A stretch of 64,000 nt of DNA from Paragordius varius (taxonomy: Eukaryota > Animalia > Nematomorpha). A model generated the notes under the pieces. That model made no database searches and was not told where the DNA came from. It saw only the letters and a program-made list of their open reading frames with translations. Of this stretch, positions 28,906 through 56,999 are shown piece by piece. Position numbers and translations under genes: made by a program. The DNA lies in the NCBI GenBank assembly GCA_964247055.1, contig OZ176060.1, positions 620,001 to 684,000 on the forward strand, given 5' to 3'. The first letter of the stretch is position 1. Each line of letters opens with the position of its first letter.

Positions 28906-29035
28906 AAAATAATGTGAGTGAGTGAGTGAGTGAGTGAGTGAGTGAGTGAGTGAGTGAGAGAGTGAATGTGTTTGTTGACTAATATATATCTCATTCACTC
29001 TCTCTCTCTCTCTCTCTCACAATTCACTCTTTCAT

Positions 29036-29075
<40 letters not shown>

Positions 29076-29266
29076 ATTCACTCTTTCATTCATCTCTCTT
29101 CTTCTCTCTCTCTCTCTCTCTCTCTCTCTAAAAATAATGTGAGTGAGTGAGTGAGTGAGTGAGTGAGTGAGTGAGTGAGTGAGAGAGTGAATGTGTTTGT
29201 TGACTAATATATATCTCATTCACTCTCTCTCTCTCTCTCTCTCACAATTCACTCTTTCATTCATCT

Positions 29267-29304
<38 letters not shown>

Positions 29305-29438
29305 AAAATAATGTGAGTGAGTGAGTGAGTGAGTGAGTGAGTGAGTGAGTGAGAGAGTGAATGTGTTTGTTGACTAATATATATCTCATTCACTCTCTCT
29401 CTCTCTCTCTCTCTCACAATTCACTCTTTCATTCATCT

Positions 29439-29469
<31 letters not shown>

Positions 29470-29757
29470 AAAAATAATGTGAGTGAGTGAGTGAGTGAGT
29501 GAGAGAGTGAATGTGTTTGTTGACTAATATATATCTCATTCACTCTCTCTCTCTCTCTCTCTCACAATTCACTCTTTCATTCATCTCTCTCTTCTTCTCT
29601 CTCTCTCTCTCTCTCTAAAAATAATGTGAGTGAGTGAGTGAGTGAGTGAGTGAGTGAGTGAGAGAGTGAGAGAGTGAATGTGTTTGTTGACTAATATATA
29701 TCTCATTCTCTCTCTCTCTCTCTCTCTCTCACAATTCACTCATTCATTCATCTCTCT

Positions 29758-29790
<33 letters not shown>

Positions 29791-30071
29791 AAAATAATGT
29801 GAGTGAGTGAGTGAGTGAGTGAGAGAGTGAATGTGTTTGTTGACTAATATATATCTCATTCACTCTCTCTCTCTCTCTCTCACAATTCACTCTTTCATTC
29901 ATCTCTCTCTTCTTCTCTCTCTCTCTCTCTCTCTAAAAATAATGTGAGTGAGTGAGTGAGTGAGTGAGTGAGTGAGTGAGAGAGTGAGAGAGTGAATGTG
30001 TTTGTTGACTAATATATATCTCATTCTCTCTCTCTCTCTCTCTCACAATTCACTCATTCATTCATCTCTCT

Positions 30072-30104
<33 letters not shown>

Positions 30105-30244
30105 AAAATAATGTGAGTGAGTGAGTGAGTGAGTGAGTGAGTGAGTGAGAGAGTGAGAGAGTGAATGTGTTTGTTGACTAATATATATCTCATTCACTCT
30201 CTCTCTCTCTCTCTCACAATTCACTCTTTCATTCATCTCTCTCT

Positions 30245-30277
<33 letters not shown>

Positions 30278-30407
30278 AAAATAATGTGAGTGAGTGAGTG
30301 AGTGAGTGAGTGAGTGAGTGAGTGAGTGAGAGAGTGAATGTGTTTGTTGACTAATATATATCTCATTCACTCTCTCTCTCTCTCTCTCTCACAATTCACT
30401 CTTTCAT

Positions 30408-30447
<40 letters not shown>

Positions 30448-30638
30448 ATTCACTCTTTCATTCATCTCTCTTCTTCTCTCTCTCTCTCTCTCTCTCTCTC
30501 TAAAAATAATGTGAGTGAGTGAGTGAGTGAGTGAGTGAGTGAGTGAGTGAGTGAGAGAGTGAATGTGTTTGTTGACTAATATATATCTCATTCACTCTCT
30601 CTCTCTCTCTCTCTCACAATTCACTCTTTCATTCATCT

Positions 30639-30676
<38 letters not shown>

Positions 30677-30810
30677 AAAATAATGTGAGTGAGTGAGTGA
30701 GTGAGTGAGTGAGTGAGTGAGTGAGAGAGTGAATGTGTTTGTTGACTAATATATATCTCATTCACTCTCTCTCTCTCTCTCTCTCTCACAATTCACTCTT
30801 TCATTCATCT

Positions 30811-30841
<31 letters not shown>

Positions 30842-31129
30842 AAAAATAATGTGAGTGAGTGAGTGAGTGAGTGAGAGAGTGAATGTGTTTGTTGACTAAT
30901 ATATATCTCATTCACTCTCTCTCTCTCTCTCTCTCACAATTCACTCTTTCATTCATCTCTCTCTTCTTCTCTCTCTCTCTCTCTCTCTAAAAATAATGTG
31001 AGTGAGTGAGTGAGTGAGTGAGTGAGTGAGTGAGAGAGTGAGAGAGTGAATGTGTTTGTTGACTAATATATATCTCATTCTCTCTCTCTCTCTCTCTCTC
31101 TCACAATTCACTCATTCATTCATCTCTCT

Positions 31130-31162
<33 letters not shown>

Positions 31163-31443
31163 AAAATAATGTGAGTGAGTGAGTGAGTGAGTGAGAGAGT
31201 GAATGTGTTTGTTGACTAATATATATCTCATTCACTCTCTCTCTCTCTCTCTCACAATTCACTCTTTCATTCATCTCTCTCTTCTTCTCTCTCTCTCTCT
31301 CTCTCTAAAAATAATGTGAGTGAGTGAGTGAGTGAGTGAGTGAGTGAGTGAGAGAGTGAGAGAGTGAATGTGTTTGTTGACTAATATATATCTCATTCTC
31401 TCTCTCTCTCTCTCTCACAATTCACTCATTCATTCATCTCTCT

Positions 31444-31476
<33 letters not shown>

Positions 31477-31616
31477 AAAATAATGTGAGTGAGTGAGTGA
31501 GTGAGTGAGTGAGTGAGTGAGAGAGTGAGAGAGTGAATGTGTTTGTTGACTAATATATATCTCATTCTCTCTCTCTCTCTCTCTCTCTCACAATTCACTC
31601 ATTCATTCATCTCTCT

Positions 31617-31649
<33 letters not shown>

Positions 31650-31757
31650 AAAATAATGTGAGTGAGTGAGTGAGTGAGTGAGAGAGTGAATGTGTTTGTT
31701 GACTAATATATATCTCATTCACTCTCTCTCTCTCTCTCTCACAATTCACTCTTTCAT

Positions 31758-31798
<41 letters not shown>

Positions 31799-32678
31799 AA
31801 AATAATGTGAGTGAGTGAGTGAGTGAGTGAGTGAGTGAATGTGTTTGTTGACTAATATATATCTCATTCACTCTCTCTCTCTCTCTCTCTCTCACAATTC
31901 ACTCTTTCATTCATCTCTCTTCTTCTCTCTCTCTCTCTCTCTCTAAAAATAATGTGAGTGAGTGAGTGAGTGAGTGAGTGAGAGAGTGAATGTGTTTGTT
32001 GACTAATATATATCTCATTCACTCTCTCTCTCTCTCTCTCTCACAATTCACTCTTTCATTCATCTCTCTTCTCTCTCTCTCTCTCTCTCTCTAAAAATAA
32101 TGTGAGTGAGTGAGTGAGTGAGTGAGTGAGAGAGTGAATGTGTTTGTTGACTAATATATATCTCATTCACTCTCTCTCTCTCTCTCTCTCACAATTCACT
32201 CTTTCATTCATCTCTCTTCTCTCTCTCTCTCTCTCTCTAAAAATAATGTGAGTGAGTGAGTGAGTGAGTGAGTGAGTGAGTGAGTGAGTGAGTGAGTGAG
32301 AGAGTGAATGTGTTTGTTGACTAATATATATCTCATTCACTCTCTCTCTCTCTCTCTCACAATTCACTCTTTCATTCATCTCTCTTCTTCTCTCTCTCTC
32401 TCTCTCTCTCTAAAAATAATGTGAGTGAGTGAGTGAGTGAGTGAGTGAGAGAGTGAATGTGTTTGTTGACTAATATATATCTCATTCACTCTCTCTCTCT
32501 CTCTCTCTCACAATTCACTCTTTCATTCATCTCTCTTCTCTCTCTCTCTCTCTCTCTCTAAAAATAATGTGAGTGAGTGAGTGAGTGAGTGAGTGAGAGA
32601 GTGAATGTGTTTGTTGACTAATATATATCTCATTCACTCTCTCTCTCTCTCTCTCACAATTCACTCTTTCATTCATCT

Positions 32679-32720
<42 letters not shown>

Positions 32721-33002
32721 AAAATAATGTGAGTGAGTGAGTGAGTGAGTGAGTGAGTGAGTGAGAGAGTGAGAGAGTGAATGTGTTTGTTGACTAATAT
32801 ATATCTCATTCTCTCTCTCTCTCTCTCTCTCACAATTCACTCTTTCATTCATCTCTCATCTTCTTCTCTCTCTCTCTCTCTCTCTCTAAAAATAATGTGA
32901 GTGAGTGAGTGAGTGAGTGAATGTGTTTGTTGATTAATATATATCTCATTCACTCTCTCTCTCTCTCTCTCTCTCACAATTCACTCATTCATTCATCTCT
33001 CT

Positions 33003-33035
<33 letters not shown>

Positions 33036-33258
33036 AAAATAATGTGAGTGAGTGAGTGAGAGAGTGAATGTGTTTGTTGACTAATATATATCTCATTCAC
33101 TCTCTCTCTCTCTCTCTCACAATTCACTCTTTCATTCATCTCTCATCTTCTTCTCTCTCTCTCTCTCTCTCTCTAAAAATAATATGAGTGAGTGAGTGAG
33201 TGAGTGAGTGAGTGAGAGAGTGAATGTGTTTGTTGACTAATATATATCTCATTCACAA
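28375..33258. repeat. Composite satellite, about 30 units of about 140-230 bp built from (CT)n and (GAGT)n tracts
   Basis: Unit: (ct)n cacaattcactctttcattcatctct..(ct)n aaaaataatgt (gagt)n gagagagtgaatgtgtttgttgactaatatatatctcattca. I counted 30 aaaaataat anchors. Confidence 0.95.
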
Positions 33259-33780
33259 TTCAAATTTACCTTTGAACAATTCAAATTCATCCTTGAACAG
33301 TTCAAATTAACCCTTAAAGAGTTCAAATTCACCCTTAAACGATTCACATTAATCCTTTTTAAAAATTCCAAATTTATTCTTAAACAATTCAAATTCCCTT
33401 TCTAGAAACAATTCAAATTCACCCTTAAAAAATATTTAACCTAAAAAATATGTTTAAGGGCTAATATCTACCATTTACAGTTTAGATTCATTCTTGAACA
33501 AATTAAAATCACTTCCTCGAAAAATTCAAAATCACACTTGAATAATTCAATTTTACATTTGATATAAAATCATCTGTTTACAGGCAGCTTTTATAACTCA
33601 TTATTAATATGAAATATATACTTTTTTAAGTTTTTTTAAAAATTATGATAATTTTAAAAGATATTTCATTTTTTAAAAAAAAAACATATATAAAAAATAT
33701 GGATAATTTTTATAATCTAAAAAACATAATTTATTTGAGGGTGAATTCGAATTGTTACAGGGTTAATTTAATTTTTTAAA
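33255..33780. mobile_element. Second, truncated copy of the foldback-like element
   Basis: It has the same 20-22-bp units (33255-33560), the same core (actcattatta..tgaaa) and the start of the right arm (tttgagggtgaattcgaattg at about 33733). Confidence 0.65.
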
Positions 33781-35001
33781 TTTAATTACCTTATTTATAA
33801 ATTTTATTAAAAAAAATCTTAAATTAATTAATATTTATTAGAATAAATATAAACAATTATTATATATATATATATATATATATATTCGACACATACATAC
33901 ATTCACATAAAAATACAAATCAGCTGTGATAATGAAATTAGCATATAAAGAAAAAAACATATGTTTGCAAATAAAATTAATTATATTTATATAAACTAAA
34001 TAATTAATATATAAAATTTTTATTTATAAAATATTTAATTATAAAAACTTATAAATATTAAAGAAAAACAGCTGTAATTAAGATTTTGAAGCACATATGA
34101 TAAAATGAATGGCAAATCATATATTTATAATTTTTTAAACTATATAAATGGAGAAAAATAACTAAATTTATAAAAAAAATTATATATATATATAAACACA
34201 ATTAATAGTATAAATAAATAATTTTTAAATATAATTTTTAATTTATTTCAGAACATAAATTCAAAAGAAAATCACATTTTTAAAAATAAAAAATATCAAA
34301 TAAAGAAAACATGATAAATTAATATGTTTGATCCCGTAAAAATTCGTTAAATATGGAATTTTCTAGAATTATATATCAAATGTGTATTATTTTGAAAAAA
34401 AATGTTGACAAATAATTAAAGAGTTTGGATGAATGAATGACTTAAATCAGGTGTTGGCGCGAATAAAGCACCATATGTAAAAATATATTTAATTTTGAAA
34501 TTTTTACCAATCAGATGTTTTTAATCCACAAATGGTTGCGTGAATGAATGATATTTTTATTTTTTAATTTTAACCGCTTTTGTTAATATTTTATGAAACG
34601 AAGTTTCCAATATTCATCAGCTGTGCAAGAACATATGGTTTTTTTAATCCAAAATTTAGGCTTTATAATGAAAGTTATAAAATTATCAGCTGTTTTAGAC
34701 ATGTGAGCGCATGAATGAATGTATAAATGAATGAATGAGCCAAAGATATCTGGTTTGTTGTAATTTTCGGTTTTGTGTAAAAATAAAGATTGGTCCTTTT
34801 TCATTTTTTTTCTAAAAAATATATAAATAATTTAATTAAAAATAAATTATTTTGGTTTTTTTGTTGTTTGAAAAAATTAATATTTAAATACTTAAAATCA
34901 GCAAATTATTTGAAAAACTCGGTAGACTTATCCTATTTTTTAAATTATTATATAAAAATATGCTCAGATGCATGATTGCAAAACAAAAATCACATGATTA
35001 A

Positions 35002-36449
35002 TCATGTCTTGGAAACGAGCATTATACTAACAATAACTCCGTAAAGACCCAAAACTTTCGAAAAAAATAAAAATCTTAACTTTTTAAAAATAATAAAATT
35101 TTCTTATACAGCTGTTTTTTACACCTGATTTTTATGCATGAATGTAGCACATGTTAATTTGACTGTTTAATACCATCTGATTTCATAAAATCACCTGATT
35201 AATTATTTCTTGGAAACAAGCATAATACTAACAATTAGTCCGTATAACCCCAAAACTTCAGCATAAATAAGTAAAAGAATCATATTTTAAGACAAATTGA
35301 TATGAAACAGCTGTTTATGTAATTTAAATATTTTCAAAAATGCATAAATATAAACATTTTTCCCCATTTTAATGCATGAATGATTAAACATATCTATTGA
35401 TAAATCACCTGATTAATCATTTCTTGGAAACCAGCATTATACTAACAATTAGTCCGTATAGACCCAACACTTTAGCAATAATAAGTATAAGAATCATATT
35501 TTATGACAAATCTGATACATTTTAAATATAAAACAGCTGTTTATGTAATATTTTCAAAAAGTGCATAAATATAAACATAAGTTAACACTTGTTTTTAGGA
35601 ATGAATCAAGAAACACATGTTAATAATTAAATGTACAAAATCACCTGTTCAATTATTTCTTGGAAACGAGCATAATACTAACAATTAGTCCGTATAATCC
35701 CAAAACTTCAGCAAAAATATTTAACTTTTTTTCGAAAAAAATCAATTTTTATCTCAAGCATGGTTAATAAAAAAATAATGAATCGACAGCTGTTTATTTT
35801 TACACCTGTTTTTATGCATGAATGTAAATACAAATGCTAAATCAACTTTTTAATATCATCTGATTTTATTAAATCACCTGATTTAATCATTTCTTGGAAA
35901 CGAGCATTATACTAACAATAAGTCCGTATAGCCCCAACACTTCGGCAAAAATAAGAAGATGAATTTTAATTTTTTTAAAAATGTAATTTCCATCTACTTC
36001 GTTAAATAATAACAAATCCTAATTCTTAAACAGCTGTTTATACCTGATTCTTTAAAACATATGTTCAGATGTATGAATGATTAAACATATCTATTGATAA
36101 ATCACCTGTTTTCATTTCTTGGAAACAAGCATTATACTAACAATTAGTCCGTATAGACCCAACACTTCAGCAAAAATAAGAATTAAACTTTTTTTAAAAA
36201 ATATAAATTCTTATCTTAACTTATATAGGTTAAAAAAATAAATCGATAGTCAAAATTAATGATTTAACAGCCTTTTTACACGTGATTCTTATAAAACATA
36301 TGCTGGCACTTATTTTTAGGAATGAATGCAAAACACATGTTTTATTATTAATTCACCTGATTTTAATCCAATTATTTCTTGGAAACCAACATAATACTAA
36401 CAATTAGTCCGTATAGCCCCAATACTTCCGCAAAAATAAGTATAAGAAT
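35002..36449 (-). repeat. Seven tandem partial copies of the 3' end of V-ATPase c exon 5 (about 65-80 nt each, including the stop codon)
   Basis: Copies at 35002-35068, 35203-35283, 35417-35497, 35653-35718, 35887-35955, 36112-36180 and 36372-36449. Each translates close to (LI)[20 protein letters not shown]. Confidence 0.93.
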
Positions 36450-36607
36450 TATTTTAAATTTATAATTTTAAGACAAATCGGATATATTTGAGATATAACT
36501 GTTTCTAAAATTATTAAATTTTTAAAAAGTGCATAAATATAAACATATGCTTCCCCCTTTTAATGCATGAATGTAAAAACATATGATTAAATAAATCACC
36601 TGATTAA

Positions 36608-36747
36608 TCATTTCTTGGAAACAAGCATTATACTGACAATAAGTCCGTACAGACCCAAAACTTCTGCAAAAATAAGTATAAGAATCATTCCCACAAACAA
36701 ACGAGGTTGTTGTGCTGTTCCACGGACTCCTGCATCTCCAACAATAC
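36608..36747 (-). CDS. ATP6V0C: V-ATPase c coding exon 5 (last)
   Basis: tttttag|GT ATT GTT GGA GAT GCA ... TCC AAG AAA TGA; 140 nt. Confidence 0.95.
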
Positions 36748-39700
36748 CTAAAAACAGATGATAAAAAATCAGGTGATCAATGAATGAATGAAATCAATGT
36801 GTAAAAAGCTTGGATTTAAAAAAAATATCTTTAGGATTGTATAGTTTAATAAATAGATTTTTACAATCCTAAAAGACTATATATGAATCTTGCTTAAAAC
36901 ATATCGTAAACATGTGATTAGTGAATGAATGGATATGTGTTAATATAAAAATATATTGATTAATTTCTCCGTCAAAAATTTATTTGATTAAAAATGGAGA
37001 AAAAAGTAAATTTAATTATTTTAAATAAATAACCAGGTGTTTAGAAATGCATTTGATAATAATTTAAAACTTATTCTTCAATCCTTAAAACAGGTAATAA
37101 AAAATCAGGTGATCAATAAATGAATGAAATTGATGTGTAAAAAAAGTAGGATTTAAAAAAAAGATCGTTATGATTTGTATAGTAAATCAATAATACATAT
37201 ATTTATTTGAAATCCTAAATAACTATATATGACACTTGCCTAATATTTATCGTAACAGGTAATAATCAGGTGATTAATGAATGAATGAAAAATATGTATC
37301 AAAAAGTTGGATTAACAAAAAATCTTGTAAATCAATAATACATATATTTATTTGAAATCCTAAATAACTATATATGACAGCCTAATACCTCTGGTAGAGG
37401 TGTTAGAAATCAGGTATTTAGTTAAATTAAATTTATCAAAAAAAATATATTAAATAACTTTTTAAAGTTTTTAATTTTAAATTAAGAATTAAATTTTTAT
37501 TTATTTAAAATTTTAATTAAAAAATAGATAATTTTAAAAAAATATATAAATATTTATATATATATTTATATTTTTTAATTTTATTAAAAATTAAAATGAT
37601 TATTTTTAAATATTATTATAACTTTTTAATAAAAAAGTTTATTTATATTTTTGAATCGTATTAAAAATTATATTTAAAAAACTTAAAAAAATTAATTTAA
37701 ACATAAATATATAAACTTTTTATAATAAATATTTTGAATTATATTAAAAATTATATTTTATATATTAAATATTAAAAATTTATATAAAAAATATATTTAA
37801 TTTAAATATTATTCAATATTATATTTAATAATTTAAGACACATAATATTATTTAAAAAATTAATATAACTTATTAAAATATATATTTAAAATAATATTTA
37901 AAAAATAATTTTAAAAAATATTTTTTAATATATAAATAAAACATTTTTAAATACATATATTAAATAAATTATATTAATTTAAATAAATATTTTTAATAAA
38001 AATTAAATATTTTAAAAATAAATGATTTTTTAAAAAAATATTTACCAATAGCAAAACCAGCTGCTAAGCCTGAAAGTCCAACGCTAAGCCCTGCGCCTAG
38101 ATCTAGGAATCCTCTAGGAAAATAAAGAAAATAATTTTTAAAAAATATTTTAATTTAAAATAAAAAAAATTATAAAGTTTATTTAAAAAAATAATATAAT
38201 TTTTATATTTTAATAAAAATAATCATAATAATTTTCAAAATAATTAATTATAAAAATTTAAATTTAATAAAAAAATTTAAAGATTTAAGGTTAATTTTAA
38301 TATATAAGAATGTTGTTTATAAATAAAAAAAAATATCATTAAAGATTTAATAATTAATTTAATTTAAAAAAAAATTATATTTAAAAATTAATTTAAAATA
38401 AAAAATTATATTTAAAAATTAATTTAAAATAAAAAATTATTTAAAAATTAAAAAATATTTATTATTAATTTTTTGATTAAGAAAATTAAATATACAATAA
38501 TATTTAAAAAATAATATATTTACTAAATTATTAATTAGTTAGGAAAAATAAAATATTTTAATTTCAAATTATTATTACATATATTAATTTATTGAATAAA
38601 AATAAATTTAATTAAATAAAAAATATTTAATGAATAAACAATAAAAAATAAATAAATAAACATATTTAATATAAAATAAAAAATTTAAACGTTTAAAATA
38701 AAATATATATTTAAAAAAAAATAATTATTTTTTTAAATATTTTTTGCTAAAAAATTATAATTTTTTAGAATCAATTTTTTAAAGTTTTACATATATTAAT
38801 TTAAATATAATTATTTTTATTATAATAATTGGATAAATGTTTTTTTAAAAATTATTTTATAAAATTTTTTATAAATTATTTTTTATATTCTTTTAAAAAA
38901 ATATTTTTAAATTATTTTTATTAAATACTTGAAAAGAGAATAATTAGATCGGCTCATTCCATTGGCGATTAAAACCGCCACCACTAAACCATAAATACCT
39001 GATGATAAAAAAAACAGCTGATATATATATTTATAATTTATAAAAATATTAAAAGTATCTTTAAAAAATATTTAAATATCTAAAAACAGATGATATAAAA
39101 TAAATAAAATATAAATATTCTTTTTATTTAAAATTTTATTTTTTAATTATTTTAATAAAAACAGAGCTATTGATAAATTAAAATTAAGCTATCAGAATGT
39201 AGAAATTTTAATTTTATGTATATTGTAATATAATCAAACATTTTCAATAAAAATATAATCTTTTCAAAAAAAATATAGCTATATTTTTCAGTTTAAAACA
39301 TTTTATTTTTAAAACCAACAAAAATTTCCAAAAAACATCTAATCTTTTCATTATCGAAACCAGCTGATCTCATCAGCTGGTTTCAACATCTGTAAATTAA
39401 TCTTTCATAAGATCATATGTGCGTTACCTAGGATACCAGCCATAACAACTGGAATGATTGATCTCATTATAAGTTCCGGTCTCATGACAGACAATTTTTA
39501 ATTTTTTTTAAAAAAAATATTTTAATTAACATAAAAACAGCTGTTTCAGATAAAAAATTGGCAATAGAAGTTTTTATCTTTATAAAATTTGAGATATAAA
39601 AACATTAAAAAAAAATTTACAAAAAAGTAAAAAAATATTTTTTAAAATTTGATATTTACTAAAAATTCAGAAAATAAAAAAAAACATCTGTTGAAAATCT

Positions 39701-41663
39701 GATGTCGAAAACAGATCTCAACAGCTGCTTATAACAGCTGATCTCATCAGCTGCTTTTCGAATAAAATCATATGTTCGTTACCTAGGATACCAGCCATAA
39801 CAACTGGAATGATTGATCTCATAATAAGTTCTGGTCTCATGACAGACATTGCTGCAATCCCTGTTCCACTCTTGGCCGTGCCATATGCTGCGCCCAAAGC
39901 TAAAAATCAGGTGATTAATGAATGTATGAAAACAGATGATAAAAAACAGGTGATTTAGAAAAAAAATCATTTTTCGATTAATAAAAAATAATTAATTGAA
40001 TATATAAAAAACGACATTAATTATATTAATTTTAATAAAATCACCAAATTAATCGATAAATTAATATATTTAATAAATATATTAGCTGATTATGGATTAA
40101 TTTTCTTATTCAATTGTTGAGAGATAATTTAAAAAAAATTGAAAAAATGGTAATTAGTTTTAGTTTTAAATTTCAGTTCATTTTTAGCTGTGCTATATGC
40201 TGCACCCAGAGCTAAAAAACAGGTGATTAATGAGTGAACAAAACAGCTGGTAATGTAAGAATGTGTGACAACATATGTTAAAAACAGGTGATTAAATAAT
40301 AAATTGATAATATAAAAAACGAAATTAATTTAATTTATAATAATTATATAAAATGATTATAATATATTAAATTTTAATTTTAATAAATATGTAAAATTGG
40401 TTAAAGTAAAAAATTATCAAATTTTAAATTGATCAAATTAACTATTAAAATATATTAAGAAAAATAAATAAACCAGCTGACTACCAAATAAATATTTTCG
40501 ATTCTTGATAAAAATTTCAAAATGTTTTATTGAATAAATTCAAAAATGGTAAATATTAAGTTTTAAAATCACAGTTTCAATATTTAGCCGTGGCAAATGA
40601 GCCCAGAGCTTAACAAATCAGGTGATGTATGAATGAATTAAGTGTTAGAACAGGTGTTAATAAAACAGATGTTAAGAACAGATGTTTACATAGTTTATTC
40701 ACCAAAAATACTATTTAAAATAAATTAAGCAACCCTAAAATTAATTTTATAATCATGTGTTTCATGAATGTAAAACATGATTACATATAATTAAAACAGG
40801 TGATTAATGAACGAATGAAAATGCATAAAAGATAGGTTTTAAAATAAAAATAATTATTAAATCTAAAAGATATAACAAAAAATATTTATTCATTTAACAT
40901 TTTAAGATTTAAATTATATTATGAAAAATATATTTTTTCTAAATTAAAAATTTTAATTAAATAATATTTATTAAATTTTATATATTTTTATATTTAATAT
41001 TTTTTATTATATATTTTTAAATATAATTTTATTATTTTTTCAATTTTTAATTTATTTTATTTTTTTAAAAATTTAAATAAATAATACTCAATCAAATATT
41101 TATTTATCATTTATTAAATAGTTAATTTAATTTGAAATTTTATAATATAAAAAATATTAATTTAAATTTTAAAAAAAAATTTATTTAATATTATTTAATT
41201 ACATTTTTCATTTATTTATATTTTTTAATTTAAAATTATAAATTAAAAAATTTCAACTTATAAATAAATATTTTTTCACTTTTTAAATTTTTTTATTTTA
41301 TATCCAAATAAATAAATTAAATAAATAAATTTTAAAATTATTTTTTAAAATAAATAAATTAAAATATTATAATAAAATAATAATTAATATTATTAAAATT
41401 AATATTTATTTTTTTTATTTTTTAAAAAAATTAATATAAAATAAAATAATTAAACAAATATTTAAATAAATAAAATATTTAAACAAATAAATTAAAAAAT
41501 ATATTTTTTAATTATAAAATAAAAATTAATTTTTAAAAAATTAATTTTTTTAAAAATATTTTTTTTAAAAAATATTTTATTTACCACTAAATATGATTGC
41601 ACTACTCGCTCCAATAACTCCAAAGAAATAGCTATAAAGGGGATTATCATCTGTGTCCGCCAT
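36608..41663 (-). CDS. ATP6V0C: V-type H+-ATPase 16 kDa proteolipid subunit c, 5 coding exons, 157 aa
   Basis: join(41663-41585, 39899-39783, 38998-38929, 38113-38046, 36747-36608) = 474 nt with all introns GT-AG. Protein: [157 protein letters not shown]. The proton-carrying Glu in TM4 is present. Confidence 0.96.
38046..38113 (-). CDS. ATP6V0C: V-ATPase c coding exon 4
   Basis: cctag|A GGA TTC CTA GAT ... GCT ATT G|gtaaa; 68 nt. Confidence 0.93.
38929..38998 (-). CDS. ATP6V0C: V-ATPase c coding exon 3
   Basis: catcag|GT ATT TAT GGT ... CTT TTC AA|gtattt; 70 nt. Confidence 0.92.
39426..39493 (-). pseudogene. Partial copy of the exon 2 3' half plus donor
   Basis: Matches 39781-39848 except ATT->ATA and CCA->CCG, both synonymous. 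It has no acceptor. Confidence 0.9.
39783..39899 (-). CDS. ATP6V0C: V-ATPase c coding exon 2
   Basis: tttttag|CT TTG GGC GCA ... GGT ATC CTA G|gtaacg; 117 nt. Confidence 0.95.
40183..40610 (-). pseudogene. Two partial copies of the exon 2 acceptor plus 5' end (40183-40213 and 40583-40610)
   Basis: tttttag|CT CTG GGT GCA GCA TAT AGC ACA GCT AAA, and aag|CT CTG GGC TCA ... ACG GCT AAA. Confidence 0.75.
41585..41663 (-). CDS. ATP6V0C: V-ATPase c coding exon 1 (start codon; acceptor at 41676-41675, NAGNAG)
   Basis: ttttag|cagacaacaaa ATG GCG GAC ... TTT AGT G|gtaaat; 79 coding nt. Confidence 0.93.
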
Positions 41664-41832
41664 TTTGTTGTCTGCTAAAAAAATTAAAAAAAATAAAATT
41701 TATTTTAAATAAAACTATTTTTAATATAAAAATATTGTTAATATTTCATAAATATATATTTCAAATAGTTATAAAAATAATTAGTTTTAAACTTTTATAA
41801 TATTAAATTATGAAATATGAATAGAAAAGATT

Positions 41833-42599
41833 TCTGTGTGCGCCATTTTGTTGTCTGCTAAAAAAATAAAAAAAACAATTATTTAATTTTGAATAATTTA
41901 ATTAAATTTATTCTAAATATTTTAAGCTATATATATTTAATAAAAATTTTTATCACTAAATATATTATTAATATAAATTTTAAATAAAATTATCATCTGT
42001 GTCCGCCATTTTGTTGTCTTCTAAAAAATATAAATTTTTGAAATAATTTTTTTTAAATAATTTAATTAAATATATATAAATAAATTATTCTAAAATTTTA
42101 GATATCAATAATTTTATATAAATATATATTTTTTATATATATTATAGGTATTTTAAATAAAAAAAGATTATCATCTGTGTCCGCCATTTTGTTGTCTGCT
42201 AAAAAATATAAATTTTTGATATAATTTTTATTAATTTTTAGAATTTATATATAAAATTTAAAAAAAACATATTTTAATTAAAATATATTAGTAGATTTTA
42301 TTTCAAATAAAAAAGATTATCATCTGTGTCCGCCATTTTGTTGTCTGCTAAAAAATATAAATTTTTGAAATAATTTTTATTAATTTTTAGAATTTATATA
42401 TAAAATTTAAAAAAAACATATTTTAATTAAAATATATTAGTAGATATAAATTTTAAATAAAGGAGATTATCATCTGTGTCCGCCATTTTGTTGTTTGCTA
42501 AAAAATAAATTTAAAAAAAAAAAATTTTTTTATTTTTTAATTATAAATATAAATATAGCTATAAATAATTTATAATTTTAGATAAAAATATATTTTTAA

Positions 42600-42633
<34 letters not shown>

Positions 42634-42916
42634 TTCAAATAGATATAAATTTAAAATAGATTATCATCTGTGTCCGCCATTTTGTTGTCTGCTAAAAAAT
42701 ATTAAAAAAAAAATAAATTTTTTTAATAATTTTTTAATTTAAATTTATAAATAAATATTATTAAAATATTATTAATGTATATTATTAAATTATTTTTTTA
42801 ATATAATATATATTTCAAATAGTTATATTAATAATTAGTTTTAAAACTTTATGATATTAAATAAAGTAAGAACAAAAAAGTCATCTGTGTCCGCCATTTT
42901 GTTGTCTGCTAAAAAA
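41833..42916 (-). repeat. Seven tandem copies of the exon 1 acceptor plus Kozak plus first 5-7 codons (about 35-nt core)
   Basis: tcatctgtgtccgccattttgttgtctgctaaaaaa at about 41833, 41993, 42171, 42320, 42470, 42664 and 42881, separated by 110-180 nt AT-rich spacers. Confidence 0.92.
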
Positions 42917-47039: not shown

Positions 47040-50000
47040 AACCACATTTCGATTTCAAATAGTAAAAAAAAGTATTTAATCATTTATTAATATGTCACCT
47101 ATAAGAGGGTAATTAACCCCTATAGATTAAATTAAAAAATTTAAATTCAGAAATTATTCATGATTAAAAATTAGTTTTTTTCAAATAATGAAAATATTGG
47201 TGAGTTTTAAATAATAAAAATATCGAAGTTTTTATAAATAAAAATGAAAAAGGCCTTAAAATTTCAAAAAATCAATTAATAATGTACTTTTTATAATGTT
47301 GTTTTACAACAATGTTTATATATTATGCCTCGTGGATGATTATTTCAAATCAGCTGATTAAATCTAAAATTTCAAAAAAAATCAATATAATGTACTTTTT
47401 ATAACAATGTTTTAAGCAACATTGTTGTCTGATAACTATATTTCGATTTCAAAAAGTAAAAAAAACCAATTAATCATTTATTAATATGCCTTTTCAGAAG
47501 GTGATTTATTTCTAATTTTAAAATTAGCTTCAGAAATCACGCTTTTATATTAAAAATGAGGTTTTTAAATAATGAAATATTGAAGTTTTTTAATGGAAAA
47601 TAATGTACTTTTTATAAATAATGTAAATATTGAAGTTTTTTAAATTAGGAAAAAGACCTAAAATTTCAAAAAATAAATCAATCAATAATGTACTTTTTAT
47701 AATATTTTATAAATTTCTATGTCCTTTTTTAAATCAAATCTTAAATTCCATACCCCTGTAAAACAAATTTATCAATAATGTACCCTTTATAAGGTTGTTT
47801 TACAACAATGTTTATATATTGTGCCTCGTGGATGATTATTTCAAATCAGCTGATTAAATTTTAAATATCAACAAATTAATTAATAATATACTTTTTATAA
47901 TGTTTTATAAATAAGGATACTATTGGATTTTTTTAAAATAATGAAAAAATGCATAAGATTTTAACAAATCAATTAATAATGTACTTTTTATAATTTTGTT
48001 TTATACAACATTGTTGATTATTCTGACCTTTCAAATCAGCTGATTATCAAATCTTAAATTTTATAAAAATAAATATAGTTTACTTTTTATAATGTTTTAG
48101 AAATTTGCTGGGTATAATTATACCCTTTTTTAAATCAAATCTTAAATTGTATACCCCTGTAAAACAAATTTATCAATAATGTACTTTTTATAATGTTGTA
48201 TTACAACAATGTTTATATATTGTGCCTCGTGGATGATTATTTCAAATCAGCTGATTAAATCATAAATTTTAATATATAAATTAATGATTACTTAATTTTT
48301 ATAATGTTTTTTAAATTTGCTGGGTAAAATTATACCCTTTTTTAAATCAAATCTTAAATTCTACCTCACCCCTTTAAAAATAAATCAATCAATAATGTAC
48401 TTTCTATAATGTTTTATAAATTTGTTTTACAAATAATTATGATTAATCTGCCTTTTTAACCTTTCAAATCACCTGATCAAAAATTTCAATAAATCAATCA
48501 ATCAATAATGAACTTTTTATAATATTTTATTATATTTTACAGATTTGCTGGGTATAATTATACCCTTTTTTTAATTCAAATCTTAAATTTCAACAAATCA
48601 ATCAATAATGTACTTTTTATAATATTTTACAAATGATTATATATTGTACCTCGTGGATGATTATTTCAAATCAGCTGATGATCAAATTATAAATTTCAAA
48701 AAATAAATCAATTAGTAATGAACTTTTTATATTTTGTTTTATACAAATTCTGTAGATTTCTATATTTCAATTTCAAAAAGTCAAAAAAAGTATTTAATCA
48801 TTTATTAATATTATTTTATATTTTAAATTTTAATTTTTATTATATGTATGCAAATGACATTGCAATTATTTTACAACTATATATTTTTAAAATATTTTGA
48901 ATCTCTTGAAATATAATTTAATCTTAAAAATTTGAAAAAACAATTTTTAGTTTAACTAAGATATATAAACTACATTTTTACCAAATTATTTCAAAAAGTA
49001 AAAAAAAAGTATTTAATTATTTATTAATATGTCACCTATAAGAGGGTAATTAACCCCTATTTTTAAAATTAACTTCAGTAAATTAAAATATGTATAAAAA
49101 AATAAAATAATGAAAAAGTAAAATAAAAAAAATGTAAAATTTATAAAATTAACTTCAGTAAATTAAAATATGTATAAAAAAATATAATAATGAAAATATT
49201 GGGTTTTAAATAATTAAAATATATAAGTTTTTTAAATAAAGAAAATATTGGTGAGTTTTAAATAATGAAAATATTGTTTTTATAAATAATTAAATATTGA
49301 AGTTTTTTTTAAATTAAAAAGAATATTGAAGTTTTTATAAATAATAAAAAATTTGGTTTTATAATGTTTTTTACAAATTTTAGTTTTTAATAAAGAAAAT
49401 ATTTGGGTTTTTAAATAATAAAAATATTGATTCTATAAATAATAAAATCCTTAAAAATTTCAAAAATAAATCAATAATGTACTTTTTATAATGTTTTAAG
49501 CAACAATGTTTATATATTGTGCCTCGTGGATAATTATTTCAAATCAGCTGATCTAAAATCCTAAATTTTAATATATAAATTAATAGTTTACTTTTTATAA
49601 TGTTTTAAAAATTTTCGTTTTTAATAATGAAAATATATATTGATTATAAAAAGTAAAAAAAGTATATTTAATCATTTATTAATATTATTATTTTTTTATA
49701 TTTTAAATTTATTATTATATATATGCAAATGACATTGCAATTATTTTACAATTCTATATTTTTAAAATATTTTAAATCTCTTGAAATAATTTAATCTTAA
49801 AAATTTGAAATTGGTTAGTTTAACTTAGATATTTATAAACTACATTTTTACCAAATTATTTTTTTAAAAAGAAAATATTAGGGTTTTTATTTATATTTGG
49901 GTTAAATTATGAAAATATTGAAGTTTTTTTAAATAAAAATGAAAAAGGCCTTAAAATTTTAACAAATTAATCAATATAATGTACTTTTTATAATGTTTTA

Positions 50001-50640
50001 AGCAACATTGTTGTCTGTGAATTGATTAAATTTCGATTTTAAAAAGTAAAAAAAAATATTTAATCATTTATTAATATGCACCTATAAGAGGGTAATTAAC
50101 CCTTATTTTTAAAATAATATATAAAATAAAATAAAAAAATGTAAAATTAATAAAATATAGATATTAAAAGTGAGGTTTTTAAAAAATAATGAAAATAAAG
50201 TTTTAATAAAAATGTAAAATTTATAAATTAATATATATAAAAAAAATTAAAATAATATATAAAATAAAAAAAAATGTAAAATTAAAATATAACTTTAGAA
50301 ATGAAAATATATTTAAAAAATTAAAATAATATATAAAATAAAATAAAAAAATGTGAAATTAATAAAATTTATAAATTAATATATATAAAAAAAATTAAAA
50401 TAATATATAAAAAAAAATAAAATTAAAATATAACTTCAGAAATTAAAATATATATATAAAAAATTAAAATAATATATAAAATAAAATAAAAAAGTGTAAA
50501 ATTAATTAAAATAATATATAAATTTAAATATATATAGAAAATTAAAATAATATATAAAATAAAATTAAAAAAAATGTAAAATTAATAAAATTTATAAATA
50601 TATATATATAAAAAATGAGGTTTTTAAAAAATAAAAATAT
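47040..50640. repeat. Modular composite repeat, block 1 (shuffled palindromic modules)
   Basis: Recurrent modules atgtcacctataagagggtaattaacccct, tgcctcgtggatgattatttcaaatcagctgat, gcaacattgttgtctg, aatgacattgcaattattttacaac and gggtataattataccc. Confidence 0.85.
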
Positions 50641-50689
50641 TTGGTTTTTAAATAATAAAAATATTGAAAAGACCATAAAATTTCAACAA

Positions 50690-52200
50690 AATAAATTTTA
50701 CAAATTTTATCTTTTTATACATTGTTTCATGAATTTAAATTAATTTGAAACAATTATTTTAAAACTATATATATATATATATATATATTGTTTAAATATA
50801 TATTATTATTTTTTTGAATAAAAAAAATATAATTATATTAATTCGATATAAAAATAAATAAAATTTAAATTAAATAATTAAATTTTATAAATTTTATCTT
50901 TTTATACATTGTTTCAAGAATTAAATTAAAATAAATTAAAATTATATATATATATATATATATATTGTTTAATTATATTTTATATTTTATTATTTTTTTG
51001 AAAAAAAAAACTTAAATATATTAATTCGATATAAAAATAAATAAAATTTAAATTAAATAATTAAATTTTATAAATTTTATCTTTTTATACATTGTTTCAA
51101 GAATTAAATTAAAACAATTATTTTGAAAATATTTTTATATTATATTTTATATTTTATTATTTTTTTGTAATAAAAAAAAACTTAAATATATTAAAAAATA
51201 AATAAAATAATTAAATTTTAATTAAATTTTATAAATTATCTTTTTATACATTGTTTCAAGAATAATTAAATTAAATTGAACAATTATTTTAAAACTATAT
51301 ATATATATATATATTCTTTAATTATATTTTATATTTTATTATTTTTTTGAATAAAAAAAAACTTAAATATATTAATTCGATATAAAAATAAATAAATTAT
51401 TAAATATTTAAATAATTTTAAAATAAATTTCATCTTTTTATACTTTGTTTCATGAATTAATTAAATTAAATTAAACAATTATTTTAAAATTATATATATA
51501 TTATTTAATTATATTTTATATTTTATTATATTTTATATTTTATTATTTTGAACAAATAAAATAATAAACTTAAATATATTAATTCGATTATAAAAATAAA
51601 TAAATTATTAAATATTTAAATAATTTTAATTAAATTTCATCTTTTTATACATTGTTTCAAGAATAATTAAAATAAATTGAAACAATTATTTTTGAATTAT
51701 ATATATATATTATTTAATTATATTTTATTATTTTTTTGAATAAAAAAAACTTAAATATATTAATTCGATATAAAAATAAATAAATTATAAAATATTTAAA
51801 TAATTTTAAATTAAAATTCATCTTTTTATACATTGTTTCAAGAATAATTAAATTAATTGAAATAATTATTTAAAAATATAATATATTTTTATATTTATTT
51901 TTGAAAAAAAAAATTAAATATATTAATTCGATATAAAAACAAATAAAATTTAAATATTTTAATTAAATTTTATAAATTTTATCTTTTTATACATTGTTTC
52001 ATGAATTAAATTAAATTATTTCAAAATTATATATATATATATATATATATATTATTTAATTATATTTTATTATTTTTGAATATAAAATAATAAACTTAAA
52101 TATATTAATTCGATATAAAAATAAATAAAATAATTAAATATTTTAATTAAATTTTATAAATTTTATCTTTTTATACATTGTTTCATGAATTAAATAAATT
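50690..52200. repeat. Tandem repeat, about 170-200-bp unit, about 9 copies
   Basis: Recurrent tttttatacattgtttca(a/t)gaatt...(ta)n...tattaattcgatataaaaataaataaa. Confidence 0.85.
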
Positions 52201-52229
52201 AAATTGTACAAATATTTTTATCAAAAGAC

Positions 52230-52499
52230 AAAACCCCATAAAACCTTATATATTTAAGAATTAAATTGTTTAATCAGCTGATCTGCAAAAAATTATTTGA
52301 TTTTAAACCTATATGTATATATATATACAGTAAAAATTGAAATTATATACGGACAAAACGTGTAAAAATATAAAGACAAATATATTTTTTTCTATAAAAC
52401 TATTTAAACGTTAATTAATTTTAGAATAAAACTGATTAATCAGCTGATATGAAAAAAATAATAAATTTTAAACTTATATATATATATATATATATATAT

Positions 52500-52535
<36 letters not shown>

Positions 52536-52849
52536 TAAAAACTGAAATTATATACGGACAAAACGTGACAATATAAAGACAATTTTTTATTTTTTAAAAG
52601 AAAACCCCATAAAACCTTATTAATTTTAAAATAAAACTGATTAATCAGCTGATCTGCAAAATATCATTTTATATTCTAAACCTATATATATACAGTAAAA
52701 TTTAAATTATACTATAGACAAAACGTGTAAAAATATAAAGACAAATATTTTTTCTAAAAAACAAACAACCCTTTATTTTTAAGTAAAATCTTAATTTTTT
52801 TATATTTAAAACTGATTAATCAGGTGATCTGCAAAAAAAATTAAATTAA

Positions 52850-52888
<39 letters not shown>

Positions 52889-53559
52889 AAAATTAAAATT
52901 ATATACAGTAAAAACTGAAAATATATAAAGACAAATAATTTATTTAAAAAAACTCATAAAAGCCTTATTTTTTAAAATAAAATTGATTTATCAACTGATC
53001 TGCAAAAAATAATTTCATTTTTAACTTATATATATATATATATATATATACAGTAAAAATTAAAAAATTAATATGGACAAAACTTGTAAAAATATATAAA
53101 GACTAATATTTTTCCTAAAATAAACATATTTTTTAGAAAATTTTGTTTTTTTTAAAAATATAATTGATTATCAGCTGATCTGGAGAAATTATTTTATTTT
53201 AAACCTATATATATATATATATATATTTATATATAACAGTAAAAATTGAAATTATATACTATGGACAAAACTTGTAAAAATATATAAAGACAAATATTTT
53301 TTTTAAAACATTAAACCTTATTAATTTTATTAAAACTGATAAATCAGCTGATCTGCAAAAAATATTTGATTTTAAACCTTTATATATATTTATTTATACA
53401 GTAAAAATTCAAATTTTTAGTAAAAAAACGTGTAAAAATATATAAAGACAAATATTTATTTTTAAAAAGACAACCAACTCCATACTTTTTAGGTAAATTT
53501 TTGATTTATTTCTTAAAATTAAAACTGATTAATCAGCTGATCTGCAAAAAAATCATTTC

Positions 53560-53608
<49 letters not shown>

Positions 53609-53741
53609 TAAAAATTAAAATTATATACGGACAAAATGTGTAAAAATATATAAAGACAATTTTATTATTCAAAAAACCCCATAAAACCTTATTAATTTTA
53701 GAATAAAAGTGTTTAATCAGCTGATCTGCAAAAAAACATTT

Positions 53742-53777
<36 letters not shown>

Positions 53778-53917
53778 AAACTGAAATTATATACAGTAAA
53801 AACCAAAAATATATAGACATATATTTTTTTCTAAAATAAAACATATTTTTAAGAAAATTTTGTTTTTTTTAAATAAAACTGATTAATCAGCTGATCTGCA
53901 AAAAATTTTTAATTTTA

Positions 53918-53956
<39 letters not shown>

Positions 53957-54627
53957 TAAAAATTATAATTATATACGGATAAAACGTGTAAAAATATAAA
54001 GACAAATATTTTTTTCTAAAATAAAACATATTTTTTAGAAAATTTTGTTTTTTTTAAAAATATAATTGATTAATCAGCTGATCTGAAAAAAAAATATTAA
54101 ATTTTGAACCTTTATATATATATTTATATATACAGTAAAAATTGAAATTTTATACTACGGACAAAACTTGTAAAAATATATAAAGACAAATATTTTTATC
54201 AAAAGACAAAACCCCATAAAACCTCATTAATTTTAAAATAAAACTGATTAATCAGCTGATCTGCAAAAAATTATTTGATTTAAACTTTTATATAACAGTA
54301 AAAATTAACATTATACGCAAAAAACGTGTAAAAATATATAAAGACAATTTTTCTTTGAAAGACAACCAACCCCATACTTTTTAGGAAAATTATGATTTTT
54401 TTCTTAAAACTAAAACTGATTAATCAGCTGATCTGCAAAATATTATTTGATTTTAAACCTATATAATATATATATAATATATATATATACAGTAAAAACT
54501 TAAAATATATAAAGACAAATATTTTTATCAAAAGACAAAACCCCATAAAACCTTATTAGTTTAAAATTAAAACTGATTAATCAGCTGATCTTAAAAAAAT
54601 TATTTGATTTTAAATCTATAATATAAA

Positions 54628-54664
<37 letters not shown>

Positions 54665-55304
54665 AAAACTGAAATTATATACGGACAAAACGTGACAATA
54701 TAAAGACAAATATTTTTTCTAAAAAGACAACCCTTTACTATTTAAGTAAAATCTTAATTTTTTTATATTTAAAACTAATTAATCAGCTGATCTGCAATAA
54801 ATTATTTTATTCTAAACTATATATATAGTAAAAATTCCATACTATGAAAACGTGTAAAAATATATAAATAACAATTTTATTATTCAAAAAACCCACATAA
54901 AACCTTATTAATTTTAAAATAAAACTGATTAATCAGCTGATAGGCAAAAAAATATAAATAAACACATATATATAAATATATATTATATATATATATATAC
55001 AATAAAAATTGAAATTATACGCAAAAAACGTGTAAAAATATAAAGACAAATATTTTTATCTAAAAAGACAAAACCCCATAAAACCTTATTAATTTTAAAA
55101 TAAAACTGATTAATCAGCTGATATGCAAAAAAAACTTTTATTCTAAACCCCTATATATATAGTTAAATTGAAATTATATACGGACAATACGTTTAAAAAT
55201 ATAAAGACAAATATTTATTTCTAAAAAGACAACCCCATAAAACCTTATTAATTTTAGAATAAAACTGATTAATCAGCTGATCTGCAAAAAATATAAAATT
55301 TTAA

Positions 55305-55335
<31 letters not shown>

Positions 55336-55950
55336 CAGTAAAAATTGAAATTATATAAATGTTAAAATATAAAGACAATTTTTTTTCTAAAAAGACAACC
55401 CTTTACTATTTAAACCTTAAAATTTTTAAAAAAAACTGATTGATCAGCTGATATGCAAAAAAATATTTGATTTTAAACCTATATATATATATTATATATA
55501 TATATATATATATAAATATACAGTAAAAATTAAAATTATATACGGACAAAACGTATAAAAATATATAAAGACAAATAATTTTTTTATCAAAAAAACAACC
55601 CTTTATTTTTTAAGTAAAATCTTAATTTTTTATATTTAAAACTGATTAATCAGCTGATCTGCAAAAAAACATTTGATTTTAAACCTATATATATATATAT
55701 ATAAAGTAAAAATATAAAGACAAAATTTTTTTTTAAAAATATAAAGACAAATATTTTTTTCTAAAATAAAACATATTTTTAAGGAAATTATAATTTTTTT
55801 CTTAAAAACTAAAACTGATTAATCAGCTGATCTGCAATTGTTAATTTTATTCTAAACTATATATATATATATATATATATACAGAAAAATTGAAATTATA
55901 TACTGACAAAACGTGTAAAAATATAAAGACCAATATATTTTAATCTTTTA
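52230..55950 (+). repeat. Tandem array (about 21 units, about 180 bp) of MITE left ends alternating with an ATCAGCTGAT module
   Basis: Unit: aaaactgattaatcagctgatctgcaaaa...aaacc(ta)n|cagtaaaaattgaaattatatacggacaaaacgtg...aaagacaaatattt...aaaagacaac. The second half equals the left TIR of the MITEs at 15963, 21103 and 26260. Confidence 0.88.
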
Positions 55951-56849
55951 AAAAACAAATTTTTAGGGAAATTTTGTTTTTTTTTAAATAAAAAATAAAA
56001 TTTGAAAAAAATATTAGATTTTCATATCTCTTTTTAAAAAATATCATTTTATTAAACTTAATTAGCTGATTATAATATATTTTGTTTATATTTAAATATA
56101 ATTATTTTATATTTTTTAGATTGTAAAAAAAACAGTTTATAAAAAATAAAAATAAATATAACATTTCGATAAAAAAATATATATATTTTAAACAATTTAA
56201 AATTTAAAAAAAAGTTAAAGTTTAAAATTAATTTATTTAAATCAGCTGATTAAAATAATAAAATAAATTATATATAATACAATATAAACACATTATAAAT
56301 TTATTATTATAATTGCAACAATGTAATAATACAATGTATGGACAAGGTAAGCAATTATATCCAAATCAGCTGTTTTTCAAAAAAATATTTAATTTTTTAG
56401 TAAAATATTTTTAATTTTTACCAAAAATATATTTTTATAATTTTATTAATTTTTAATTTTTTGATAATTACATTTATTTAATTTAATTTATTTTCATTTT
56501 TATTAAATTTTAATTATTTGATAATTTGAAAATATTTTTAATTTAATACCAAAAAATAATCTTTCCATATTTTTATTATTTGAATTTTTCAAAAATTTAT
56601 TAATTTACCTTTTATAAATATTGTGAAAAATTATTAATATAAAAAAATTTTAGTTTTTTCAAAAATTTATTAATTTATTTTTTATTCAAATTTAAATAAT
56701 TAATATTAAAAAATTTTTTTAATTTTAAAAATGTTTAAAATATTTTTTTTAATATATCTTTAATTTTAAGATTCTAAAAAATATTTAAAAAAAATTATTT
56801 TTTAATTTTTTTTTAATTTTTATAAAAATATTTTTATTAAATAAATTGT

Positions 56850-56970
56850 TTCAAAACAATGTTGCAATAACAATGAGTAAAAGTAATGCAGAATCCAACA
56901 AAATTGTCGTCAGGTGATTGCGTGAATGAATGAATGAACCAGATGATTTCTTGGTTCCGCCCCCGTGAAC
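56850..56970. other. Unique GC-richer island (possible regulatory element or small exon)
   Basis: Contains ACAATGTTGC, CAGGTG, (TGAA)3, CAGATG and CCGCCCCC within an AT sea. A decayed partial copy lies at about 56312-56372. Confidence 0.4.
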
Positions 56971-56999
56971 AAAATAATAAAAATATTGAGGTTTTTTAA

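Follow-up and report, generated by a model that had tools for sequence, protein, structure and literature searches.

What could keep a row of truncated exon ends legible as protein when nothing in their arrangement suggests that they are genes? The question is raised by a 64,000-nucleotide (nt) stretch of the Paragordius varius genome (the window, to whose coordinates all positions refer), which carries on its minus strand the gene for the 16-kDa proteolipid of the V-ATPase (subunit c, PF00137). This gene was rebuilt from five coding exons (41663-36608) that splice into a product of 157 amino acids. Its fifth exon, here called the live exon (36608-36747, minus strand, with relatives in PF00137), starts on a split codon (G) after a phase-1 intron, is preceded by the acceptor TTTTTAG/GT at 36748 (the slash marks the junction), and ends with the stop codon TGA at 36608-36610. 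Downstream of it, within 1.7 kb, lie seven 5'-truncated copies of the exon end (C1-C7), all in the same orientation and spaced 201-260 nt apart. A 28-nt core of the exon tail has eight matches, all on the minus strand, namely the live exon and the seven copies, and occurs nowhere else; none would be expected by chance.

The last 22 codons served as the unit of comparison (36673-36608 in the live tail). Over this span C1, C2, C3 and C4 differ from the live tail at 10, 5, 6 and 9 nt, and every difference is synonymous, including CTT>TTG and CTG>TTA in leucine codons and TGA>TAA in the stop codon. The codon comparison thus reproduces exactly the counts of an earlier reading of the sequence, the original prediction, which had also placed replacements in the three distal copies; they are found in C5, C6 and C7 only. 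C1 (36372-36449, minus strand like all the following) ends in TAA, and four of its 10 silent changes are private to it. C2 (36112-36183; stop TGA) has an in-frame 6-nt gap in the part encoding ILIL, C3 (35887-35955) likewise ends in TGA, and C4 (35653-35718) in TAA. C5 (35417-35497) and C6 (35203-35283) both start with ATGATT. The former combines six silent changes with F>I and E>K, the latter, which ends in TAA, eight silent changes with F>Y and, further upstream, I>L; all four replacements fall upstream of an AAG site to which we return below. The most distal copy, C7 (35002-35067), is decaying, with I>F, A>S, E>K, L>V and K>T.

The copies are cut off on their 5' side at five distinct points: ATGATT (C5, C6), ATTCTT (C1), CTTATT (C2, C3), ATTTTT (C4) and one near GAAAG (C7). 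Silent states are shared among the copies in a mosaic fashion, as had been noted before, with GCA/GCG/GCT/GCC, GTT/GTA/GTG and GGT/GGG/GGA all represented. Three states (GCA, CTG, GTC) are private to the live tail, and no copy is closer to it than 5 nt, as judged from one haplotype. The copies have also kept G or C at 6-9 of 21 third positions, similar to the live exon with 7, while G+C in the spacers is about 0.2. The composition of the flanks had been put at 85-90% AT; this was too high, the spacers being 77-83% AT.

Several observations demonstrate that C1-C4 evolved under purifying selection on the encoded peptide, with silent divergence as high as that of the spacers. With states counted per alignment column, the live tail and C1-C4 together require a minimum of 16 independent silent events and not one replacement. 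Any one random change to this sequence would be synonymous with a probability of 0.23-0.28, and a 3-fold or 10-fold bias of GC>AT leaves this value at 0.23, so that the chance of the silent-only pattern lies between 6e-11 and 1e-9. In the same set the mean silent divergence (pS) is 0.38 (dS about 0.53) and the replacement divergence (pN) about 0, which is the outcome of a silent-versus-replacement test that had been named beforehand. The changes moreover follow the genetic code: first-position C>T in leucine codons is found only where the third base is A or G (TTA, TTG), fourfold sites show up to four states, with all four bases at one of them, and twofold sites are fixed. Private changes number six silent and no replacement in C1-C4 (four of the six in C1), against two silent and about nine replacements in C5-C7. 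Finally, the antisense frame has replacements (R/S/N, N/K) at places where the sense peptide is invariant. Because the antisense frame shares third positions and varies where the sense frame does not, the sense peptide must be what was selected. Selection at the protein level, proposed in the original prediction, is borne out on these three grounds, the code-aware changes, the less conserved antisense and the ratio of 16 to 0.

The same evidence disposes of a number of simpler explanations. Neutral decay, a series of snapshots of the exon and assembly error are rejected because of the silent-only counts, the code-aware changes and a silent divergence no lower than that of the spacers. Neutral decay in particular is ruled out by 16 silent changes against no replacement (P<1e-8). 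In a ladder of live-exon snapshots the nearest copy should resemble the exon most, yet C1 differs most and carries four silent changes of its own. Such a ladder also predicts about three-quarters replacements on the copy lineages, outnumbering the silent changes of the exon, and is contradicted by the observed 6:0. Concerted evolution or homogenisation fails on the silent sites (pS 0.38), which are at least as diverged as the aligned spacers (12-20% mismatch plus many indels). An antisense open reading frame as the selected product is excluded by its variation where the sense peptide is constant, and a micropeptide starting at the ATG of C5 and C6 by the lack of this ATG in C1-C4. The copies are not processed pseudogenes or retrocopies either, as they stand in tandem and in the same orientation, have in common spacer types that do not look transcribed, and lack an A-tail at the unit ends.

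How the array came about can be read from its units, in each of which the last 17-27 codons of the exon and the stop are followed by a CAGGTGA box and then a spacer. The array of 201-260-nt units goes back to the pervasive tandem duplication of this genome, one breakpoint of which fell within exon 5; a breakpoint inside an exon necessarily leaves an intact exon beside truncated copies. It became a mosaic when blocks of units were subsequently duplicated and units recombined by unequal crossover. The spacers show a three-unit higher order, in which U1 is like U4, U2 like U5 and U3 like U6. Those of U2 and U5 share 36 identical nt, C5 and C2 being recently related. U4 and U5 are similar to U0 in their second halves, which makes these units hybrids of U1 or U2 with U0. 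Judged from the sequence, such hybrids and the three-unit order are the expected products of unequal crossover between units. Groupings by tail and by spacer disagree, with tail C4 nearest to C6 but spacer U6 nearest to U3, and exchange among copies must therefore have occurred. Between partner copies of the duplicated three-unit block, silent and replacement differences number 6:0 for C1/C4, 7:1 for C3/C6 and 1:2 for C2/C5.

Two short motifs are conserved together with the coding span. The first is the CAGGTGA box, core of ATCAGGTGAT, which lies 5 nt past the live stop (36596-36602, minus strand) and 3-12 nt past the stops of C1-C6, at 36353, 36102, 35874, 35641, 35405 and 35191. Despite this variation in linker length it is invariant in seven of eight units and changed only in C7, to CATGTGA. 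The second, ATTTTTGCNGAAG (36661-36673 in the live exon, minus strand), is a pyrimidine tract with AAG, located exactly where the conserved block begins on its 5' side; every one of the seven copies has it as well. Its AAG ends at 36661 in the live exon and then at 36425, 36165, 35940, 35706, 35470, 35256 and 35055. In C7 the exon-derived sequence before AAG is even more T-rich, and downstream of AAG six of the seven copies are free of replacements. Exons 1, 2 and 4 have phase-1 donors ending in G, with which this site is in phase, and copies joined there would read an open frame of G+TN (Val), 16 codons and then TGA or TAA. These motifs bear on two earlier statements. It had been observed that the copies lack the acceptor of the exon, and the native one is indeed absent from all seven, but an internal pyrimidine tract with AG is kept in each. 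The further statement that ordinary splicing cannot translate the copies is consequently not secure, given the T-rich tract and AAG in 7/7 copies, in phase with the donors. Only the live exon has a GCA that makes a second AG (TTTTTGCAG/AAG), three bases before AAG; it is also phase 1, and the exon-4 G+AA would read Glu.

The leading reading, though unproven, is that the copies are selected directly because they are decoded. It leads because it is what remains after the other explanations have been tested, and from the sequence we would favour it only tentatively, at well below an even chance. The copies would act as alternative terminal cassette exons: a G-ending phase-1 donor, that of exon 4 but also those of exons 1 and 2, would join the pyrimidine tract and AAG, the split codon G+TN would give Val, and a 16-residue peptide and the stop would follow. 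Cassette use of this kind would be the sole route to decoding visible in the sequence. The CAGGTGA past the stop might then be a 3'-side signal, either resembling a 5' splice site (CAG/GTGA) or serving as a protein-binding box, and the distal copies might be used less, hence their decay. Canonical splicing at homologous points was rejected, since there is no AG/GT within the tail.

A number of points weigh against direct decoding. An AAG that follows purines makes a weak acceptor, and the five real acceptors in this gene all read YAG. The predicted product would be short by 29 residues, including the essential proton-binding Glu of the fourth transmembrane segment (TM4), and it is hard to see why the exact sequence of such a product, or seven redundant cassettes, should be needed. 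The codons of C1-C4 upstream of AAG (IFAE, and ILIL in C1) are also replacement-free, which fits a coding constraint on the whole span equally as well as a constraint on the pyrimidine tract.

The alternative that survives best is exchange in the germline, in which unequal crossover or gene conversion puts a copy tail into the expressed position and haplotypes bearing replacements are purged. Visible traces of unequal crossover in the array (the U4 and U5 hybrids, the three-unit order, the conflicting groupings) speak for this possibility. Furthermore, constraint drops with distance from the exon (C5-C7), the replacements in C5 and C6 are confined to the inner 5' side, the part that would be transferred least often, and splice signals would not be required. 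On the other hand, exchange would erase silent divergence too, yet pS is 0.38 and no less than in the spacers, and the live tail retains its three private states at 5 nt or more from every copy. Selection on a copy would equal the transfer rate, which by our own estimate is about 1-20 times the per-site mutation rate, and would be effective only if 4Ne*mu were about 0.2 or more, again our own estimate. The available data on diversity are far from this value. Of the 31-mers of 36500-40000, 85-92% are present in contigs of two samples, corresponding to a difference of at most 0.5% over that interval, and for the exon-5 stretch one sample contains 100% of the 31-mers and the second 75%; the two samples may represent one inbred line. 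The related horsehair worm Gordionus has a heterozygosity of 0.55%. This thin evidence points to a diversity of roughly 0.5% and not to about 0.2. The original prediction had listed exchange with archiving of alleles from a hyperdiverse population as a candidate mechanism. Unequal crossover among the units of the array is seen; as a whole the proposal is quantitatively strained by the private live states, the missing homogenisation and the low diversity, and we regard it as unlikely, though not negligible.

In a second alternative the copies are recent snapshots of very divergent functional alleles, derived from long-diverged haplotypes or introgressed species. This would account for silent-only differences without any present use of the copies, and also for spacers as diverged as the silent sites; the neutral-looking decay of C5 since its separation from C2 (one silent change, two replacements) agrees with it as well. 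It needs, however, at least 4-5 functional alleles at a pS of 0.3-0.5, with all four bases at one fourfold site. To our knowledge this exceeds any known animal diversity. The two samples lie within about 0.5% of the assembly, with the reservation about inbreeding just made, and C1/C4 and C3/C6, both pairs of silent copies, nevertheless differ by 6:0 and 7:1, with four private silent changes in C1 alone. Capture of divergent alleles is thus improbable.

A third alternative involves a 10-base-pair palindromic box of the form ATCA(G/C)(G/C)TGAT (ATCASSTGAT), whose core past the stops of the live exon and of C1-C6 is the CAGGTGA described above. It occurs 46 times (47349-62670 and 34990-40626) where 0.12 occurrences are expected. 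Each unit of the 170-220-nt satellites at 47-62 kb carries one, as does each unit of the tail array past its stop, and it is also found just before the acceptors of exons 2 and 5. The box may bind a protein or mark recombination; we know of no binding protein for it. The alternative assumes that the live exon is joined to a copy by homology but not heritably, in somatic DNA or at the RNA level, for instance by annealing at box-dependent breaks or by template switching. Such joining would reconcile strong selection, high silent divergence and low population diversity, and the box could mark the breaks. Annealing of 66-80-nt repeats at 85-92% identity is, however, normally very inefficient, recombination from box to box would delete copies instead of expressing them, and nothing beyond the box supports the idea; we know of no such joining in Nematomorpha. 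We consider it quite improbable. The same low standing applies to its fullest form, in which truncated exon-end copies would be kept as translatable parts for a homology-guided, non-heritable step (somatic DNA or non-spliceosomal RNA joining), maybe marked by the box. If true, it would explain how partial exon copies can be codon-clean while their silent sites drift.

An artefact, whether haplotypes stitched in tandem or neutral pseudo-exons with a pattern that is due to chance or acts at the nucleotide level, is very improbable: the 31-mer look-ups of independent runs did not cover the tail array (35002-36455), but five 5' truncation points and three or more mosaic spacer types with indels are not expected from haplotype stitching, chance has P below 1e-8, antisense is less conserved than sense, and the array showed no Rfam family and no unusual fold.

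Direct decoding, if it holds, would have its closest counterpart in the alternative exons that arise from tandem exon duplication, which have reportedly been surveyed by Kondrashov and Koonin and by Letunic, Copley and Bork. Common to both are adjacent copies in the same orientation with an open frame under purifying selection. Unlike those exons, the copies described here comprise only the 3' third of the exon without its native acceptor, and the intact ones encode the same peptide and so add no protein diversity; their use in mRNA is predicted. A different parallel is offered by arrays of silent cassettes that feed an expression site by gene conversion, such as trypanosome VSG, Borrelia vlsE, Neisseria pilS and the chicken pseudo-V genes. 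There too, truncated promoterless copies lie beside one expressed copy. The cassettes of these systems differ at replacement sites, whereas C1-C4 differ at silent sites only and encode the same peptide of a housekeeping gene; and while the expressed copy in such systems carries cassette tracts, the live exon is without a recent tract in the one haplotype at hand. With regard to the box, alpha satellite carries the CENP-B box, and the similarity lies in one short conserved box of the protein-binding type per roughly nucleosome-sized unit. The box here is instead the palindrome ATCA(G/C)(G/C)TGAT, and one of its arrays has an exon end inside the unit. Within the same phylum, mitochondrial genes of Nematomorpha carry coding palindromes in the form of perfect inverted repeats (PMC6649704). 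These are similar in that repeated segments overlap coding sequence, but they are inverted and perfect, while the copies here lie in the nuclear genome as direct, truncated repeats whose silent sites have diverged strongly.

The tail array thus combines truncated exon ends that look non-coding with a clear signature of selection at the peptide level, and this in an essential housekeeping gene. Should the copies be decoded, a class of exons, or a mode of exon joining, would be lacking from gene models of the phylum. Otherwise, extreme population genetics would be needed, either exchange with selection or allele capture. In our literature searches, exon-end arrays were nowhere described. Two short open reading frames of the tail array had no exact match on record, a protein search with the open reading frame of exon 5 matched only fragments from other species, and an Rfam search and folding of the array gave no family and no unusual fold (z -0.48).

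The age of the array can be bracketed by comparison with a relative. In a profile search with a foreign full-length protein and exon pieces, the closest named relative of the protein came from the horsehair worm Gordionus sp. m RMFG-2023; the Paragordius varius protein itself was not among the matches of that search. The Gordionus ortholog (L001 10001-24750) has three coding exons and is without introns 2 and 4, and its locus shows no tail copy within 10 kb downstream and no enrichment of the box. Silent sites are saturated between the two species (pS 0.81). Relative to Gordionus all eight tails share derived states, and the array therefore arose within the Paragordius varius lineage. The two extra introns, both phase 1, are located at AGIL/G/IYG and GFAI/G/IVGD, sites that read G/G(T/A) in the uninterrupted Gordionus coding sequence. 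They were either gained in this genome or lost in Gordionus.

The remainder of the gene provides the context in which the array can be judged. The coding part of exon 1 spans 41663-41585 on the minus strand, as do the exons that follow; as a feature (41585-41674) this first coding exon comprises its acceptor, then CAGACAACAAA, then ATG...IIFS, and has a phase-1 donor. Exon 2 (39783-39899), ending in ...VVMAGIL, also has a phase-1 donor, exon 3 (38929-38998) ends on a split codon (K), and exon 4 (38046-38113) has the phase-1 donor ATTG/GTAAAT with G as its last base. Introns 1, 2 and 4 are all phase 1, and each follows an exon that ends in G.

Other exon edges have been copied at this locus as well. 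The 3' half of exon 2 has been copied together with its donor at 39428-39492 (minus strand); the two differences of this donor-side copy are both silent, which is not significant. An acceptor-side copy of the start of exon 2 is found at 40176-40211 (minus strand), with an older copy at about 40608. It looks silent-biased, with 5:1 in the first ten codons. Polarised by the copy at 40608, three silent changes fall on the lineage of live exon 2, and the copy's own lineage has two silent changes and at least three replacements, all GC>AT, which looks like ordinary neutral GC>AT decay. Upstream of the first coding exon, seven copies at 41857-42908 (minus strand) contain its acceptor, CAGACAACAAA of the 5' untranslated region and ATGGCGGACACAGATGATAAT, its first seven codons. 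They are near-identical at every position, including the untranslated region, and have no synonymous signature. Within this locus a compelling coding signature is present only in the tail array. A core of the upstream copies, AAAATGGCGGAC, resembles a YY1-type site.

Making tandem arrays is an ordinary property of this genome. G+C is 21% across the window and falls to 6-10% in some 1-kb stretches, and arrays with periods of 50-390 nt crowd the neighbourhood of the V-ATPase c gene. The last approximately 79 nt of intron 4 (CATTCATTCATTGATCACCTGATTTTTT...AG) are present in three copies at 36747-37322, and in the two that are internal to the intron the exon-5 part that comes next has degenerated into AT-rich sequence. 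From about 29000 to 33250 extends a satellite richer in G+C (about 39%), with units of approximately 148 nt made of (CT)n and (GTGA)n runs. In Rfam its hairpins near 33.0-33.2 kb match plant miRNA families by chance, in every case below the gathering score. It is followed at 33255-33433 by a 21-nt tandem repeat, ACAATTCAAATTCACCCTTAA, in about eight copies.

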